Of a DNA stretch of 64,000 nucleotides, positions 1-4,181 are shown piece by piece. The notes under the pieces are model-generated. The model was given only the letters and a program-made list of their open reading frames with translations. It made no database searches and was not told where the DNA came from. The stretch's first letter is position 1; each line of letters begins with the position of its first letter. A program made the translations under genes and the position numbers. The stretch covers positions 124,001 through 188,000 of the IMG/VR virus record IMGVR_UViG_3300027749_002876; one strand, given 5' to 3'.

Positions 1-19
1 ATATAAAATATAAATGTTT

Positions 20-289
20 TTACGGAGCATCTAGTATTTGAGTACTAACAATATTACAATTATATTGAGTTGCTTTCTGCATAATAAAATCAATATATTC
101 TTGTGCAGCCGATTGATCTATCCAATATCTATCACAGGTAACATCATCAACCATTATTCCAATTCCGTCTGTTTTGTTTGCCGCAGTCATTTCTTGAATT
201 TTAATTTCTCTATCACTATCAAGTGCCTCATGTCCTGCCCAATCTGCAACCGTTAGCCATTTAATTTTAGTAATTTTAGTTAGTGCCAT
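20..289 (-). CDS. hypothetical protein (89 aa)
   Basis: ORF with upstream AGGAG SD and ATAAATA motif; no recognisable family. Confidence 0.7.
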   Translation of the reverse strand: MALTKITKIKWLTVADWAGHEALDSDREIKIQEMTAANKTDGIGIMVDDVTCDRYWIDQSAAQEYIDFIMQKATQYNCNIVSTQILDAP

Positions 290-352
290 TTATGTTCTCC
301 TGTATACTCTATTTATCTAAAAATAACATTAATTATTACAAATGTACTTATT

Positions 353-428
353 TGGTGCCAACAGCTGGACTTGAACCAGCAACACAAGAATTTTCAATCC
401 TCTGCTCTACCATTGGAGCTATGTCGGC
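353..428 (-). tRNA. tRNA-Phe(GAA)
   Basis: Cloverleaf GCCGACA...TGTTGGC-A-CCA, anticodon loop TTGAAAA, T-loop TTCAAGT. Confidence 0.95.
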
Positions 429-433
429 TTGTT

Positions 434-508
434 TGGTGGATGATAGTGGGGTCGAACCACTGACCTCTTTCTTGTCACGAAAGTATTCTACCGCTGAAAT
501 AATCATCC
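434..508 (-). tRNA. tRNA-Val(GAC)
   Basis: GGATGAT/ATCATCC acceptor, CTTTC-GTGACAA-GAAAG anticodon arm (unusual G32), encoded CCA. Confidence 0.9.
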
Positions 509-584
509 TGGTGCTCCTAGATGGATTCGAACCATCGACTTCTCCATACCAAAGAGATATTTTACCATTGCAAACTATGGGAGC
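509..584 (-). tRNA. tRNA-Thr(GGT)
   Basis: GCTCCCA/TAGGAGC acceptor (one mismatch), loop TTGGTAT, encoded CCA directly abutting tRNA-Val. Confidence 0.9.
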
Positions 585-590
585 ATATAA

Positions 591-742
591 AAGTGGGAGC
601 CTAGCTATCTTATTGTTAATAAACCTCACTAGATTGTCTCGTATAGGCAAGTTTATACACCCATCAATCATACTATAGTGTCATCACAGTTAACCCCACC
701 GTGACTAGATTGACAGGGACTCAAACCTATCGTCTATCCCTA
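591..742 (-). ncRNA. candidate structured RNA between tRNA-Gln and tRNA-Thr
   Basis: ~150-nt spacer with several G-U-containing hairpins on the minus strand (GATAGG/CCTGTC, CACGGT/ACTGTG, GTATA/TATAC, GGTGGGG/TCCCACT). Confidence 0.4.
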
Positions 743-745
743 AAC

Positions 746-819
746 TGGCACCCGGGGTAGGAATCGAACCTACAATAGCAGAGTCAAAGTCTGTTGTGTT
801 ACCACTACACTACCCGGGA
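746..819 (-). tRNA. tRNA-Gln(TTG)
   Basis: Loop CTTTGAC, U1 start, T-loop TTCGATT, CCA. Confidence 0.93.
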
Positions 820-826
820 ATAAATT

Positions 827-903
827 TGGTAGCCTCACCCTGACTCGAACAGGGGACCTTCCGCTTATCAAGCGGATGCTCTAACCAACTGAGCTATGAG
901 GCT
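827..903 (-). tRNA. tRNA-Ile(GAT)
   Basis: TCCGC-TTGATAA-GCGGA arm, canonical D and T arms, CCA. Confidence 0.95.
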
Positions 904-911
904 AAACTGTT

Positions 912-986
912 TGGTGGATGTAAGTAGATTTGAACTACTGACCTATTCCGTATGAAGGAATTGCACTACCGCTGTGCTATACATCC
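912..986 (-). tRNA. tRNA with CAT anticodon (elongator Met or Ile2)
   Basis: ATTCC-TTCATAC-GGAAT arm; G1-C72 paired, so not initiator-type. Confidence 0.88.
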
Positions 987-988
987 AT

Positions 989-1064
989 TGGGGTGAAGGA
1001 CGAGACTTGAACTCGCAACAACTGGAATCACAATCCAGGGCTCTACCATTGAGCTACCGACACC
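989..1064 (-). tRNA. tRNA-His(GTG)
   Basis: CTGGA-TTGTGAT-TCCAG arm, G-1 and C73; two acceptor-stem mismatches. Confidence 0.9.
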
Positions 1065-1070
1065 ATATGT

Positions 1071-1157
1071 TGGAGGAAGATAACAGAATCGAACTGTCAC
1101 CGTGTAAACAGTGGGACGGTTTTCAAGACCGTGTCCGCGCCATGCAGCCTATCTTCC
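1071..1157 (-). tRNA. tRNA-Ser(TGA), probable 8/4 cloverleaf
   Basis: ACGGT-CTTGAAA-ACCGT arm, long variable arm, GGAAGATA/TATCTTCC 8-bp acceptor plus 4-bp T-stem. Confidence 0.88.
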
Positions 1158-1159
1158 TA

Positions 1160-1345
1160 TTATGCTTTTTTATCTACTTGATGATTACTATGTGTAGGTT
1201 CTAATTTACCTACTTTATCATATAGATACTGTACAACTTCTAAGTATTGTTTATTAGTTGCAGGATCTTGTAATGTTTTATAAACTGTTGTACGATATTG
1301 ATGATTGGTAATATCGTTTACCGCTGATATAGTTTGAATTATCAT
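1160..1345 (-). CDS. hypothetical protein (61 aa; start moved to MIIQT)
   Basis: ORF just downstream of the ATAAATA motif. Confidence 0.6.
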   Translation of the reverse strand: MIIQTISAVNDITNHQYRTTVYKTLQDPATNKQYLEVVQYLYDKVGKLEPTHSNHQVDKKA

Positions 1346-1352
1346 AATGTAT

Positions 1353-1370
1353 GTATTTATTAATAAATAC
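1353..1370. promoter_or_regulatory. palindromic back-to-back late-promoter motifs GTATTTATTAATAAATAC
   Basis: Perfect 18-bp palindrome giving ATAAATA on both strands between two divergent ORFs; resembles T4 late TATAAATA. Confidence 0.6.
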
Positions 1371-1373
1371 AGT

Positions 1374-1925
1374 ATGATACTCACAACAACTCCAATTAAG
1401 CAACATACTCAGTTAGTACATTTAGATATGCCATACACATATGAAGAAGTTTTAAATGAGCTAAACACATATGAGTTTAATGAAATTCATCCTTATCGTT
1501 ATAATTCTGCAATAACCACCAAAATTCTTAGTGAAATAAGACAACTAATAGTTGACTACTCTTTTATAGATAAATTTTATGAAATAAAAGATTTTCAAAA
1601 GTTGTGGAATAATGTATCTAAGGAAGAACTTAAAAAAAAATGTAAGTTCGATTGTTCTTTACATCTTGATAAACCTAAATTTTCTCTTACACCCCACCTT
1701 GATAGTAGACAAATTGTAATAGTTGGGATGATTTTCTTGAACCCAGTGAATGATATTAAACAAAACTCTGTACTATATGATACAGAAAATATGCTGAATC
1801 CACAATATGTACCTTCATCATTTGGAGAAGGATGGGTTATGGCTAATGCACATAACACATGGCACTCAGGTGGAAACTCATCTGACTATGATAGATATAG
1901 TATATTGTTCACCTATACCATATAG
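1374..1925 (+). CDS. 2OG-Fe(II) oxygenase-like protein
   Basis: HxD (PHLD)...H (TWHSG)...RYS motif pattern. Confidence 0.7.
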   Translation: MILTTTPIKQHTQLVHLDMPYTYEEVLNELNTYEFNEIHPYRYNSAITTKILSEIRQLIVDYSFIDKFYEIKDFQKLWNNVSKEELKKKCKFDCSLHLDKPKFSLTPHLDSRQIVIVGMIFLNPVNDIKQNSVLYDTENMLNPQYVPSSFGEGWVMANAHNTWHSGGNSSDYDRYSILFTYTI

Positions 1926-1945
1926 ATATTTATACTATCATGATT

Positions 1946-2022
1946 ACAATGTAAATTGGATTTGAACCAACATTTCCAGGACAAGACGCCGGGTTTCCTA
2001 GCTATTTAGAAGATTACATTGT
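1946..2022 (-). pseudogene. degenerate tRNA-like element
   Basis: 9-bp closing stem ACAATGTAA/TTACATTGT, intact T arm GTTGG-TTCAAAT-CCAAT, D-like arm, irregular anticodon arm, no CCA. Confidence 0.55.
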
Positions 2023-2110
2023 TACCATATAGAAACACACTGGCTTGCAAGACTCCTACTAACCTTTCGATAGATGTCGCAGTTAGTATTCAATGTGTTT
2101 TTATATGGTA
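2023..2110 (-). other. long stem-loop pairing with the 3' ACCA end of tRNA-Lys(TTT)
   Basis: TACCATATAAAAACACATTG...CAGTGTGTTTCTATATGGTA, ~20 bp. Confidence 0.6.
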
Positions 2111-2179
2111 GGGGTGTTCGGGAACGATCCGAATTTTACCGGTTAAAAGCCGGTTACTTCACCTTAAAGTTTCACCCCC
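2106..2179 (-). tRNA. tRNA-Lys(TTT), non-canonical A8/U14 and A54/U58
   Basis: ACCGG-CTTTTAA-CCGGT arm, T-loop ATCGTTC, CCA. Confidence 0.88.
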
Positions 2180-2182
2180 ATA

Positions 2183-2256
2183 TGGTCCCACACCACGGTA
2201 ACGATCCGTGTTTTACCGGTTAAGAGCCGGTTACATCACCTTAATGTTTGTGAGGG
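2183..2256 (-). tRNA. tRNA-Lys(CTT), non-canonical A8/U14 and A54/U58
   Basis: ACCGG-CTCTTAA-CCGGT arm, T-loop ATCGTTA, CCA. Confidence 0.88.
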
Positions 2257-2319
2257 ATGGATTCGTAAATATTTTCTTTTACGTGCCATCCAGGACCATA
2301 CGGGGGTCTAAGATGACAC
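2255..2319 (-). promoter_or_regulatory. putative two-state RNA switch between the MKRSGKR leader and tRNA-Lys(CTT)
   Basis: GTGTCATC/GATGGCAC stem excludes the GGATGG/CCATCC stem that pairs with tRNA nt -4..+2. Confidence 0.6.
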
Positions 2320-2342
2320 TATCGTTTACCTGAACGTTTCAT
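2319..2342 (-). CDS. leader peptide MKRSGKR
   Basis: AAGGAGA SD 5 nt upstream of ATG AAA CGT TCA GGT AAA CGA TAG. Confidence 0.65.
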   Translation of the reverse strand: MKRSGKR

Positions 2343-2363
2343 GTCGTTCTCCTTTTAAAAATT

Positions 2364-2442
2364 TGGTACCCTGCCCCGGAGTCGAACCGAGAAAACTCTT
2401 CCTTTTGAGAGAAGCGACTTTGCCAAATTTGTCTAGCAGGGC
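2364..2442 (-). tRNA. tRNA-Leu(CAA) with short variable region
   Basis: CTTCT-CTCAAAA-GGAAG arm, A73, only 6-nt variable region. Confidence 0.87.
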
Positions 2443-2449
2443 ATATGTT

Positions 2450-2526
2450 TGGTGCGACCGGAGAGATTCGAACTCCCGACTCCTAAGTTCGTAGCCTAGT
2501 ACTCTATCCAACTGAGTTACGGTCGC
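2450..2526 (-). tRNA. tRNA-Arg(ACG)
   Basis: GCGACCG/CGGTCGC acceptor, loop CTACGAA, A20, CCA. Confidence 0.95.
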
Positions 2527-2601
2527 ATTCTATAACACACTGAATGCCTTTTCCTTGCGTCAGGGGTAAGGGGCAGTGTTCGTCAATGTATTATAGAATG
2601 C
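2525..2601 (-). other. long stem-loop abutting the 5' end of tRNA-Arg
   Basis: GCATTCTATAATACATTGA...TCAGTGTGTTATAGAATGC, 19 bp, with G-U pairs only on the minus strand. Confidence 0.6.
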
Positions 2602-2721
2602 CGTGTATTGCTACACAACATGATAGGGTTGATACCCTATCCAGTAGTCTTACTAACATGTTGTCTCCATGTTTTCATGTATACTGTCCGCCCATTCTAT
2701 ACATTTTGCGCTGTATTACGG
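2601..2721 (-). ncRNA. candidate multi-branched structured RNA in the tRNA operon leader
   Basis: ACAACATG/CATGTTGT closing a 3-way junction with TTAGTA/TACTGG and ATAGGGT/ACCCTAT; ATGTATA/TATACAT; CCGT/ACGG ends. Confidence 0.45.
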
Positions 2722-2747
2722 CTCTCGTTGCCTATTCACGCTGTCTA

Positions 2748-2894
2748 TCAGTTTACCTTATACAGGATCTGATAGACCTTTGCACGTTGTAACTTGTTAG
2801 CTATCAACTGTGCTAGTTGTTCCTTTGTCAAAACATGATTGCTAAACCAATCACGCTTTGTTTCAGAAGTTTTGTATTGTATCTCTTTATCCAT
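2748..2894 (-). CDS. possible small protein MDKEIQYKTSETKRDWFSNHVLTKEQLAQLIANKLQRAKVYQILYKVN (48 aa)
   Basis: Open frame just after the terminator; its start lies within the spacer of promoter P2, so it is uncertain. Confidence 0.3.
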   Translation of the reverse strand: MDKEIQYKTSETKRDWFSNHVLTKEQLAQLIANKLQRAKVYQILYKVN

Positions 2895-2904
2895 TTATTG
2901 TCAA
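2876..2904 (-). promoter_or_regulatory. sigma70-type promoter P2 (TTGACA-17-TACAAT)
   Basis: Consensus -35, 17-nt spacer, near-consensus -10, facing the tRNA cluster. Confidence 0.7.
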
Positions 2905-2917
2905 ATCCTCTCTGTAC

Positions 2918-2952
2918 AAAACAAAAAACCTGAGAGTCTTGCGATTCCCAGG
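2918..2952 (-). terminator. intrinsic terminator (attenuator) upstream of the tRNA cluster
   Basis: CCTGGGAATC-GCAA-GACTCTCAGG followed by TTTTTTGTTTT. Confidence 0.8.
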
Positions 2953-3000
2953 GTCTTGATAAATTTAGTTATAATGTTAACTTGTTACCTAGTCCCCGGG
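2947..3000 (-). promoter_or_regulatory. antiterminator hairpin overlapping the leader stop codon and the terminator 5' arm
   Basis: CCCGGGG/CCCTGGG, CT/AG, GGTAA/TTATC, AGTTA/TAACT stacked stems. Confidence 0.7.
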
Positions 3001-3122
3001 CTTCTCTCTTGGTTATCATTTGAGCCGCGAATACTTGTTGGATATGCTGGTACAAAGGATACACTGGCTATCGTTAGCCACTGTCCGGTATGTTTCAGCA
3101 TGTTACAAGTTTTATTCATCAT
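2985..3122 (-). CDS. leader peptide MMNKTCNMLKHTGQWLTIASVSFVPAYPTSIRGSNDNQERSPGTR (45 aa, all 20 amino acids)
   Basis: Translated by hand; 36 distinct codons; ends in the antiterminator stem; CTAAATA late-like motif 7 nt upstream. Confidence 0.7.
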   Translation of the reverse strand: MMNKTCNMLKHTGQWLTIASVSFVPAYPTSIRGSNDNQERSPGTR

Positions 3123-3197
3123 AGTCTTTTATTTAGTCCTGGTTGTAAATTAGTGTAATTAACATATGTTTTTACACCTTTTTTCAATTCATGCTGA

Positions 3198-3226
3198 AGT
3201 ATAGCATAGATTGGAATTAATGTCAA
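3198..3226 (-). promoter_or_regulatory. sigma70-type promoter P1 (TTGACA-17-TATACT, extended -10 TG)
   Basis: Near-perfect consensus in an intergenic region upstream of the leader peptide. Confidence 0.8.
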
Positions 3227-3248
3227 CTTCTTTTTTAGGCGGTTTACC

Positions 3249-4181
3249 CTAAACGTTTAGACCTAAACGTTTAGAGATGTGTCTTTGCACCCTGGCATCA
3301 GTGTTTTTATAGAAAGAAATCAATTCTTGTATTGGTATTATGATATGATGTTTGTCATATCTAACTTTATTAAGCAATGAATCGTTTTCTATCCAATCTA
3401 TTTTTTCAAATCCTGTCAATTTTGGAAAGTATAATAATTCATCTCTCCAATACTTAGCCAAGAAGAAAGGTTTAACATAATACTCGTATCTTAGCACGTG
3501 GGGTATTTTTTTATGTTCTTGATTAGCTGCCTTTTCCATAATCAACCCGTTATCTTCAAAATATTCCCAACTGTGCAGGAACTGTTCAACTAGAGGATCT
3601 GATATGCAACTAAGCCACAACTCACTGGTGTCACCAAATATTACAATTTTACCTGATCGGTTTTCTATAGCAGTCAATGCTCTATGTCTGGATACGTCAG
3701 GATCAAACCAACCATAATAAACATAATGTAATTTTTTTCTAAGCAACAACCATGGGGTTGACATACATTGCACTATATCATAATCATTTGGTAATTCTTT
3801 AACAAATAAATGTTGTAATGCGTGGTTAGGATGAACATCTGTTTGTTGCGCTATGTGTTCTATTTCTTCTCTTCGGGTATTTGGATTAATGTTGATTACG
3901 TTAGTCTTAAAACCATACTTTTTTTCTAAAAGTTTTACATTTTCGTATTCAGTTTCATTATAGCCGTCGACTCGTAGAAATGAGCATTCTACTGGAATGT
4001 CTTGAGTCTTTAGACTATGAAGTACTAATTGACTATCTAATCCACTACTTAAACAAAGCATCAATTTATCAGACGCAATTTCTCTAGCACGCCTGTCAAA
4101 TTCTTCTCTATAGTTACCAATTTTTCTATTACTACTAGTGATATCTATATAGAACTTATAATCGTCAAATCCATATATCAT
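3249..4181 (-). CDS. PP-loop (adenine nucleotide alpha-hydrolase-like) protein
   Basis: LCLSSGLDS motif near the N-terminus; C-terminal KLTGFE shared with paralogs. Confidence 0.7.
   Translation of the reverse strand: MIYGFDDYKFYIDITSSNRKIGNYREEFDRRAREIASDKLMLCLSSGLDSQLVLHSLKTQDIPVECSFLRVDGYNETEYENVKLLEKKYGFKTNVININPNTRREEIEHIAQQTDVHPNHALQHLFVKELPNDYDIVQCMSTPWLLLRKKLHYVYYGWFDPDVSRHRALTAIENRSGKIVIFGDTSELWLSCISDPLVEQFLHSWEYFEDNGLIMEKAANQEHKKIPHVLRYEYYVKPFFLAKYWRDELLYFPKLTGFEKIDWIENDSLLNKVRYDKHHIIIPIQELISFYKNTDARVQRHISKRLGLNV

Follow-up and report, generated by a model that had tools for sequence, protein, structure and literature searches.

In a tRNA array on the minus strand of a giant phage, a seven-codon reading frame with two lysine codons lies directly in front of two tRNA-Lys genes. 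Why should a mini-ORF precede tRNA genes, and could its translation decide whether these tRNAs mature? We analysed a 64,000-nt stretch of the IMG/VR record IMGVR_UViG_3300027749_002876 (positions 124,001 to 188,000), hereafter the window. The order of the array is tRNA-Arg(ACG) 2526-2450, tRNA-Leu(CAA) 2442-2364, a 107-nt spacer, tRNA-Lys(CTT) 2256-2183 and tRNA-Lys(TTT) 2179-2106, the latter with the T-loop ATCGTTC. The spacer contains a Shine-Dalgarno (SD) sequence AAGGAGA at 2354-2348, which is followed after 5 nt by the ORF MKRSGKR at 2342-2319 (ATG 2342-2340, Lys codons AAA at 2339-2337 and 2327-2325, TAG 2321-2319). Hairpin A (2319-2283; 5' strand 2319-2305, loop 2304-2298, 3' strand 2297-2283) begins at the G of TAG, contains 9 + 4 bp and folds at -16.8 kcal/mol. 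GGATGG (2291-2286) in the 3' strand of A is complementary to CCATCC (2260-2255), and this alternative pairing B encloses hairpin C (CGTAAA/TTTACG, 2283-2264), whose first C is shared with the closing pair of A. Since ARAGORN starts tRNA-Lys(CTT) at 2256, CCATCC covers positions -4 to +2 of this tRNA. Thus, the sequence-only reading, which had placed the SD, the ORF and the competing pairings A and B here, is correct in every coordinate. The leader alone folds as A plus C at -26.6 kcal/mol (z = -2.3), and the whole precursor 2319-2106 folds with z = -4.9. The first fold also showed a hairpin sequestering the SD, however, its bases are not conserved in the alignment. It should be noted that in the window tRNA-Lys(CTT), which starts with a C1-G72 pair, is called only by ARAGORN. 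The tRNA model of Rfam does not report it even in a 201-nt search at E up to 10, and it has a U4-U69 mismatch and an odd T-loop, while tRNA-Lys(TTT) scores 47.4 bits. In other loci the CTT tRNA is canonical, and its cloverleaf is full of compensatory changes.

To determine whether this arrangement is more than chance, we searched for further copies. Megablast and blastn with the region and with the leader alone found no close relatives among cultured phages, and a scan of 185,579 species genomes found none either. Rfam searches at E up to 1 over 1-4000 and at E up to 10 over 2170-2370 returned no T-box or any other cis-regulatory family for the leader. Neighbouring proteins gave no useful context, with no Pfam or PHROG match beyond RNR, a radical SAM enzyme and lectin-like domains, and tblastn with RNR and with the 2201-aa protein gave only distant hits to phages of mixed hosts. 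It turned out, however, that the module is common in uncultured material. An exact 48-mer of tRNA-Lys(TTT) found 16 IMG/VR contigs, nearly all with the same ORF-hairpin arrangement in very different flanks. A pattern over the hairpin found at least 120 IMG/VR contigs. A second pattern, which required neither the ORF, the TAG nor the 5' strand of A, found at least 120 metagenome contigs, and all 103 distinct copies from that scan had the ORF ending in TAG. Pooled, these scans gave 188 distinct true copies. Depending on the contig, the module sits behind a near-consensus promoter, another tRNA or a conserved hairpin, and therefore it travels as a unit.

In all 188 copies codon 2 and the second-last codon are Lys, with AAA used far more often than AAG. 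Exactly one further codon follows, which is free (R, L, P, K, S, M, I, H, Q), and then TAG, whose G opens hairpin A. The ORFs are 6-9 codons long, indels come only in threes, and entropy rises across the codon, from 0.21-0.36 at position 1 to 0.47-0.66 at position 2 and 0.71-0.86 at position 3. An SD-like motif lies within 20 nt of the ATG in 180 of 189 copies. Read-through of TAG into a longer frame was rejected, because the length of the hairpin varies from 36 to 41 nt by amounts that are not multiples of three.

We next assessed which tRNAs the leader accompanies. Of 109 distinct IMG/VR copies, 93 are followed by tRNA-Lys(CTT) and 10 by tRNA-Lys(TTT), 62-71 nt after TAG. The remaining six are truncated loci, chance pattern hits, or one tRNA remnant. 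Of the 93 CTT tRNAs, 86 are followed 2-6 nt later by tRNA-Lys(TTT). The fetched loci hold 4223 tRNAs, and an SD plus mini-ORF lies upstream of 163 of 178 distinct tRNA-Lys(CTT) contexts. For every other species the rate is 0-12%, and those cases are spurious frames inside the preceding tRNA. The CTT tRNAs behind the leader are diverse (68 sequences, median identity 65%, seven clusters), and all of them start with C.

To test whether the alternative structures are maintained, we examined their covariation. Hairpin A folds in all 99 aligned copies, at -13.6 to -22.8 kcal/mol. Its lower helix is 92.5% paired against 21-57% when partners are slid, with compensatory UA/AU/CG exchanges. When the 5' strand of A is removed, its 3' strand pairs with positions -4 to +2 or +3 of the CTT tRNA in almost every copy, and the two sides change together: GGATGG with CCATCC, GGTTGG with CCAACC, GGGTTG with CAACCC, GGGATGG with CTATCCC, and AAGGTG with CACCTT in a locus whose tRNA starts CTT. 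Column-wise covariation for B on the first MAFFT alignment was blurred by register shifts (78.7% paired but few double changes), and we replaced it with duplex-energy permutation tests and a second alignment. Native B duplexes average -9.5 kcal/mol against -6.8 for mismatched partners, and 0 of 2000 shuffles did as well. Hairpin C is conserved but nearly invariant, and offers no covariation evidence either way. Thus, the ORF, its Lys codons and the stems are conserved, and A and B covary, as the sequence-only reading requires.

We also found a third pairing, D, which the sequence-only reading had not seen. The last two bases of the inner 5' strand of A, its apical loop and the inner part of its 3' strand (2306-2293, CCCCCGTATGGTCC) are complementary over 14 bp, with one G-U pair, to 2188-2175 (GGACCATATGGGGG). 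This target covers positions 71-76 of tRNA-Lys(CTT), the spacer TAT and positions +1 to +5 of tRNA-Lys(TTT), so that one leader addresses both tRNAs. Across loci helix D is worth -14 to -30 kcal/mol and follows changes in spacer length and in the tRNA start. Loop CCCGTATTGG goes with junction CCAATACGGG, CCCATGTATGG goes with CCATACATGGGA, CTTCCATGTATGG goes with CCATATTATGGAAG, and ACTCCGTATGG goes with CCATTACGGAGT. Native pairs beat shuffled ones in 5000 of 5000 trials, and this holds even with one representative per junction class. However, much of the complementarity of D rests on motifs that hardly vary (GGACCA, GGGGG), even mismatched partners reach -20 kcal/mol, and since the copies are related sequences, the shuffle controls overstate their independence. 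On a MAFFT alignment not fitted to these helices, D plus B are 89.2% paired against 33-60% when partners are slid, and nine pairs changed on both sides against 5.5 +/- 1.2 expected, which was reached by 0 of 500 shuffles. In copies that lack the CTT tRNA, the same strand forms one continuous helix of about 20 bp that ends at position +5 of tRNA-Lys(TTT). Therefore, the CTT tRNA looks like an insertion into the target strand of a simple two-hairpin switch.

For 86 full precursors we compared the energy of the open state (A, C and two cloverleaves) with that of the minimum-energy fold. They differ by 4.8 kcal/mol on average, and the minimum contains D in 58 precursors and B in 62. For the window the minimum is the masked state at -79.3 kcal/mol. 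RNAalifold, which rewards covariation, returns A plus the cloverleaf. Both states are therefore encoded, and they are close in energy, so B is not a weak side structure. Nearest-neighbour energies ignore tRNA tertiary structure, modifications and co-transcriptional order, and do not tell which state forms first. It is possible that the antisense clamp works without translation, as a storage or processing structure of the precursor, for example a substrate for RNase III or RNase E or a site for a phage protein, and that the mini-ORF encodes a small basic peptide with its own role or has no function. The masked state is the computed ground state in most copies even without a ribosome, the loop of A is strongly conserved, helix D is long enough to be a nuclease substrate, and a further long hairpin with a conserved base follows tRNA-Lys(TTT). 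We consider this unlikely, because the stop codon is fused to the first pair of A in all 188 copies, the spacing between Lys and the hairpin is fixed, and the peptide is only 6-9 residues long with a free last residue.

Transcription attenuation could also be suggested, since a leader ORF with cognate codons and mutually exclusive helices is found in the trp, his and pheST leaders. Leader translation would then decide whether RNA polymerase terminates before the tRNA-Lys genes, at an intrinsic terminator or through Rho. However, no terminator-like site lies on the minus strand between 2363 and 2106. Hairpin A is followed by GTAAAAG and pairing B by CTCACAAAC, neither a U-tract. In addition, the alternative helices pair with the tRNA ends themselves, including a site about 150 nt downstream, which a terminator would not need. 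This explanation is very unlikely.

To assess whether a ribosome could select between the two states, we simulated ribosome cover on 93 leaders, each with its CTT tRNA. With no ribosome, or with the last Lys codon in the A site, leader positions -4 to -1 are unpaired, and CTT bases +1 and +2 pair with the acceptor 3' strand in 88 of 93. With the ribosome at the stop codon (6 nt of A masked), at least 3 of positions -4 to -1 are paired in 83 of 93, and tRNA positions +1 and +2 pair with the leader in 49. With 9 nt of A masked, the first tRNA base pairs with the leader in 88 of 93. The last Lys codon begins 8 nt before the first pair of A in every copy. With that codon in the A site, A therefore starts 11 nt downstream of the first P-site nucleotide. 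The bacterial mRNA channel holds 11 nt downstream of P-site position +1, and a stem in this geometry has been shown to hinder A-site tRNA binding (PMC7282821), with a slowing of 15-20 fold (PMC8861025). Thus, the likely sensing codon is the second-last Lys and not the first, at which the sequence-only reading had placed the stalled ribosome. Its decoding would be made slow by the hairpin, and hence dependent on Lys-tRNA supply, and it is also the step that starts to unwind the hairpin.

Some tRNA-Lys(TTT) genes have a different leader (family II, as opposed to family I described above). It consists of AAGGAGA, then nCTGTC, then an ORF reading M-x-S-D-K-S-D/G-K-x-x that runs straight into the tRNA without any hairpin, and its stop codon lies inside the tRNA, usually at positions 8-10. 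A pattern that fixed only the SD and start region returned 36 copies with a tRNA within 60 nt. All 36 tRNAs are tRNA-Lys(TTT), with several different tRNA bodies, and the last Lys codon starts 8 nt before tRNA position +1 in 31 of the 36. One copy with a single SDK unit keeps the same spacing. The sequences of the two families are unrelated, and the covariance model of family I finds no copy in family II loci and only one copy in the window. A 48-aa CDS overlapping tRNA-Lys in Synechococcus phage BUCT-ZZ01 has no homologue in the phage collection, and its Lys-to-tRNA spacing is 12 nt, not 8.

Taken together, these data support the sequence-only reading, according to which a ribosome reaching the stop melts A and the tRNA becomes masked, in an enlarged form. 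In the first state hairpin A is closed, the leader just upstream of tRNA-Lys(CTT) and the CTT/TTT junction are single-stranded, both tRNAs fold, and RNase P can cut them. In the second state the 5' strand of A is held away from its partner, B takes positions -4 to +2 or +3 of tRNA-Lys(CTT), and D takes the ACCA end of CTT, the spacer and positions +1 to +5 of tRNA-Lys(TTT), so that both RNase P sites and both acceptor stems are buried. If Lys-tRNA is plentiful, the ribosome would move two more codons to TAG and melt about 7 bp of A, and little new tRNA-Lys would mature. If Lys-tRNA is scarce, for example after attack by an anticodon nuclease, ribosomes would wait at the Lys codons, A would stay closed and both phage tRNA-Lys would mature. 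We consider this reading more likely than not, although translation of the ORF, the effect on RNase P, the direction of control in vivo and the trigger, including any link to PrrC or PARIS, are inferred, and it does not explain why a phage should limit tRNA-Lys maturation at all. The reverse polarity, in which translation to the stop codon promotes maturation and stalling blocks it, has no direct support and is very unlikely. A ribosome ending at TAG can reach only the 5' strand of A and cannot unwind B or D, which lie downstream, and covering this strand frees the antisense strand. In family II translation runs into the acceptor strand and D arm of the tRNA, which cannot coexist with the tRNA fold.

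We cannot rule out that the two-state RNA is ribosome-gated but reads general translation activity, or acts as a folding timer that orders processing of the two tRNAs. In this case the Lys codons would serve efficient initiation and termination context. Lys as the second codon favours initiation in general, and AAA is probably common at this position in well-translated genes. The base after each Lys codon is C in about 92% of copies, and TAG is universal in the leader although it ends only 1 of 23 long ORFs in the window. The Arg codons of the leader are always CGN, although AGA makes up 39% of Arg codons in the long ORFs of the window. This points to a constraint at the nucleotide or codon-pair level that our model does not explain. 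However, only tRNA-Lys, out of about 40 tRNA species in the same arrays, carries a leader, two unrelated leader families both keep two Lys codons and the same 8-nt spacing to the structure, and the other codons of the ORF are free to vary. Therefore, a generic sensor seems unlikely.

The logic of the element is that of the trp, his, leu and pheST attenuators of enterobacteria, where the position of a ribosome on a short SD-driven ORF with cognate codons selects between mutually exclusive helices, giving negative feedback from charged-tRNA supply. Here, however, the regulated genes are tRNAs and not mRNAs, the alternative helices pair with the tRNA ends, no intrinsic terminator is present, and there are only two regulatory codons, one of them at a fixed distance from the hairpin. 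In the ErmCL and CatA86 leaders of erm and cat genes, a ribosome on a very short ORF also remodels a downstream hairpin without ending transcription, but stalling is caused by a drug and the nascent peptide and exposes a ribosome-binding site, whereas here the presumed signal is a hungry codon and the output is the folding of a tRNA precursor. T-box riboswitches likewise feed the state of one specific tRNA back onto genes of the same amino-acid pathway through alternative helices, but they bind the tRNA directly, need no ribosome and control synthetase or amino-acid genes. In dnaX-type frameshift sites a stem-loop also starts 11-12 nt downstream of the first P-site nucleotide with a Lys codon in the A site (PMC7282821). 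In our case the bases before TAG (GGT AAA CGA) do not form a slippery heptamer, there is no extended frame, and the pause would be used for sensing, not for recoding. ARAGORN reports no tmRNA in the window, and the ORF has its own SD and ATG, in contrast to a tag reading frame without a start codon. Phage tRNA-Lys is known in counter-defence, as T5 tRNA-Lys against PARIS AriB and as anticodon-loop variants against PrrC-type nucleases (PMC11464382, PMC10264068). Those studies concern the tRNA sequence itself and describe no regulatory leader.

We know of no tRNA gene controlled by a leader peptide, and full-text literature searches found none. It is possible, though we put it at somewhat less than even, that this is a new regulatory class, a ribosome-gated antisense clamp built into a polycistronic tRNA precursor, which releases two phage tRNA-Lys when lysine decoding fails. 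That would make it a built-in alarm against anticodon nucleases aimed at tRNA-Lys, and the design appears to have evolved at least twice. If the model holds, this is the first case in which codon-specific ribosome pausing controls the folding and maturation of the very tRNA that reads that codon, that is, direct homeostatic feedback on a tRNA pool. It gives a natural use for the 11-12 nt stem-loop pause geometry outside frameshifting, in a module that is compact (about 260 nt) and portable across genomic contexts. The module singles out tRNA-Lys, the tRNA attacked by PrrC and PARIS, and therefore offers a testable idea of how large phages sense and answer tRNA-targeting defence.

Around the feature, the window (1-64000; see also locus L007 of the loci we fetched) is identical to a 524,565-bp IMG/VR contig. 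It carries at least 12 tRNAs in 2.5 kb, as well as class I ribonucleotide reductase (28278-25960), a radical SAM protein (12807-11311) and a weak QueC-like match (8130-6679). Most of the large ORFs match no family, and the nearest cultured relatives are very distant.

In the window (2342-2319) and in all leader copies, the Arg codons are always CGN, although AGA makes up 39% of the Arg codons in the window's long ORFs. The codon after each Lys starts with C in about 92% of copies. A final Leu is always CTN, although the genome prefers TTA. No current model explains this. In one fetched locus, L050, the tRNA-Lys(CTT) body, about 60-110 nt after the TAG of the leader, is reduced to what looks like an acceptor-stem minihelix. 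However, the leader, the B target and the D target all remain in this locus.

We also found that a second leader family sits before tRNA-Lys(TTT). It was seen in loci L001, L153, L252-L272 and part of L274-L381 (for example, at 4323-4400 of L252). In this family, an SD is followed by CTGTC and then by an ORF reading M-x-S-D-K-S-D/G-K-x-x, which runs into the tRNA and stops at about tRNA positions 8-10. The last Lys codon starts 8 nt before tRNA position +1. In the Synechococcus phage BUCT-ZZ01 (ON615601; locus L273, 1376-1522), which has a cultured host, an annotated 48-aa CDS rich in Lys and Arg runs into tRNA-Lys(TTT) and stops in its D loop. However, the last Lys codon of this CDS is 12 nt, not 8, before the tRNA, and the CDS has no homologue in the phage collection.

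The phage tRNA-Lys of the window (2183-2256 and 2106-2179) have a T-loop reading ATCGTTC or ATCGTTA, where positions 54 and 58 are normally U and A. The same loop occurs in the cultured Synechococcus phage BUCT-ZZ01 (L273, 1502-1575). The CTT copy of the window also has a U4-U69 mismatch, and Rfam does not score it. On the minus strand at 2020-1947, Rfam's tRNA model scores 35 bits (gathering score 29) but ARAGORN calls nothing. Parsing this region by hand suggests an 8-nt loop containing CTT on a mismatched stem. It is possible that this is a degenerate or unusual third tRNA.

On the minus strand, tRNA-Lys(TTT) is followed by a hairpin of about 90 nt (2110-2023; -29.7 kcal/mol, z = -4.85), and the 5' strand of its basal stem begins with the ACCA end of the tRNA. 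In other loci the base of this hairpin is conserved, while the interior of 60-70 nt differs completely. In some contigs the same element precedes the leader. This element may be a processing site or a small RNA.
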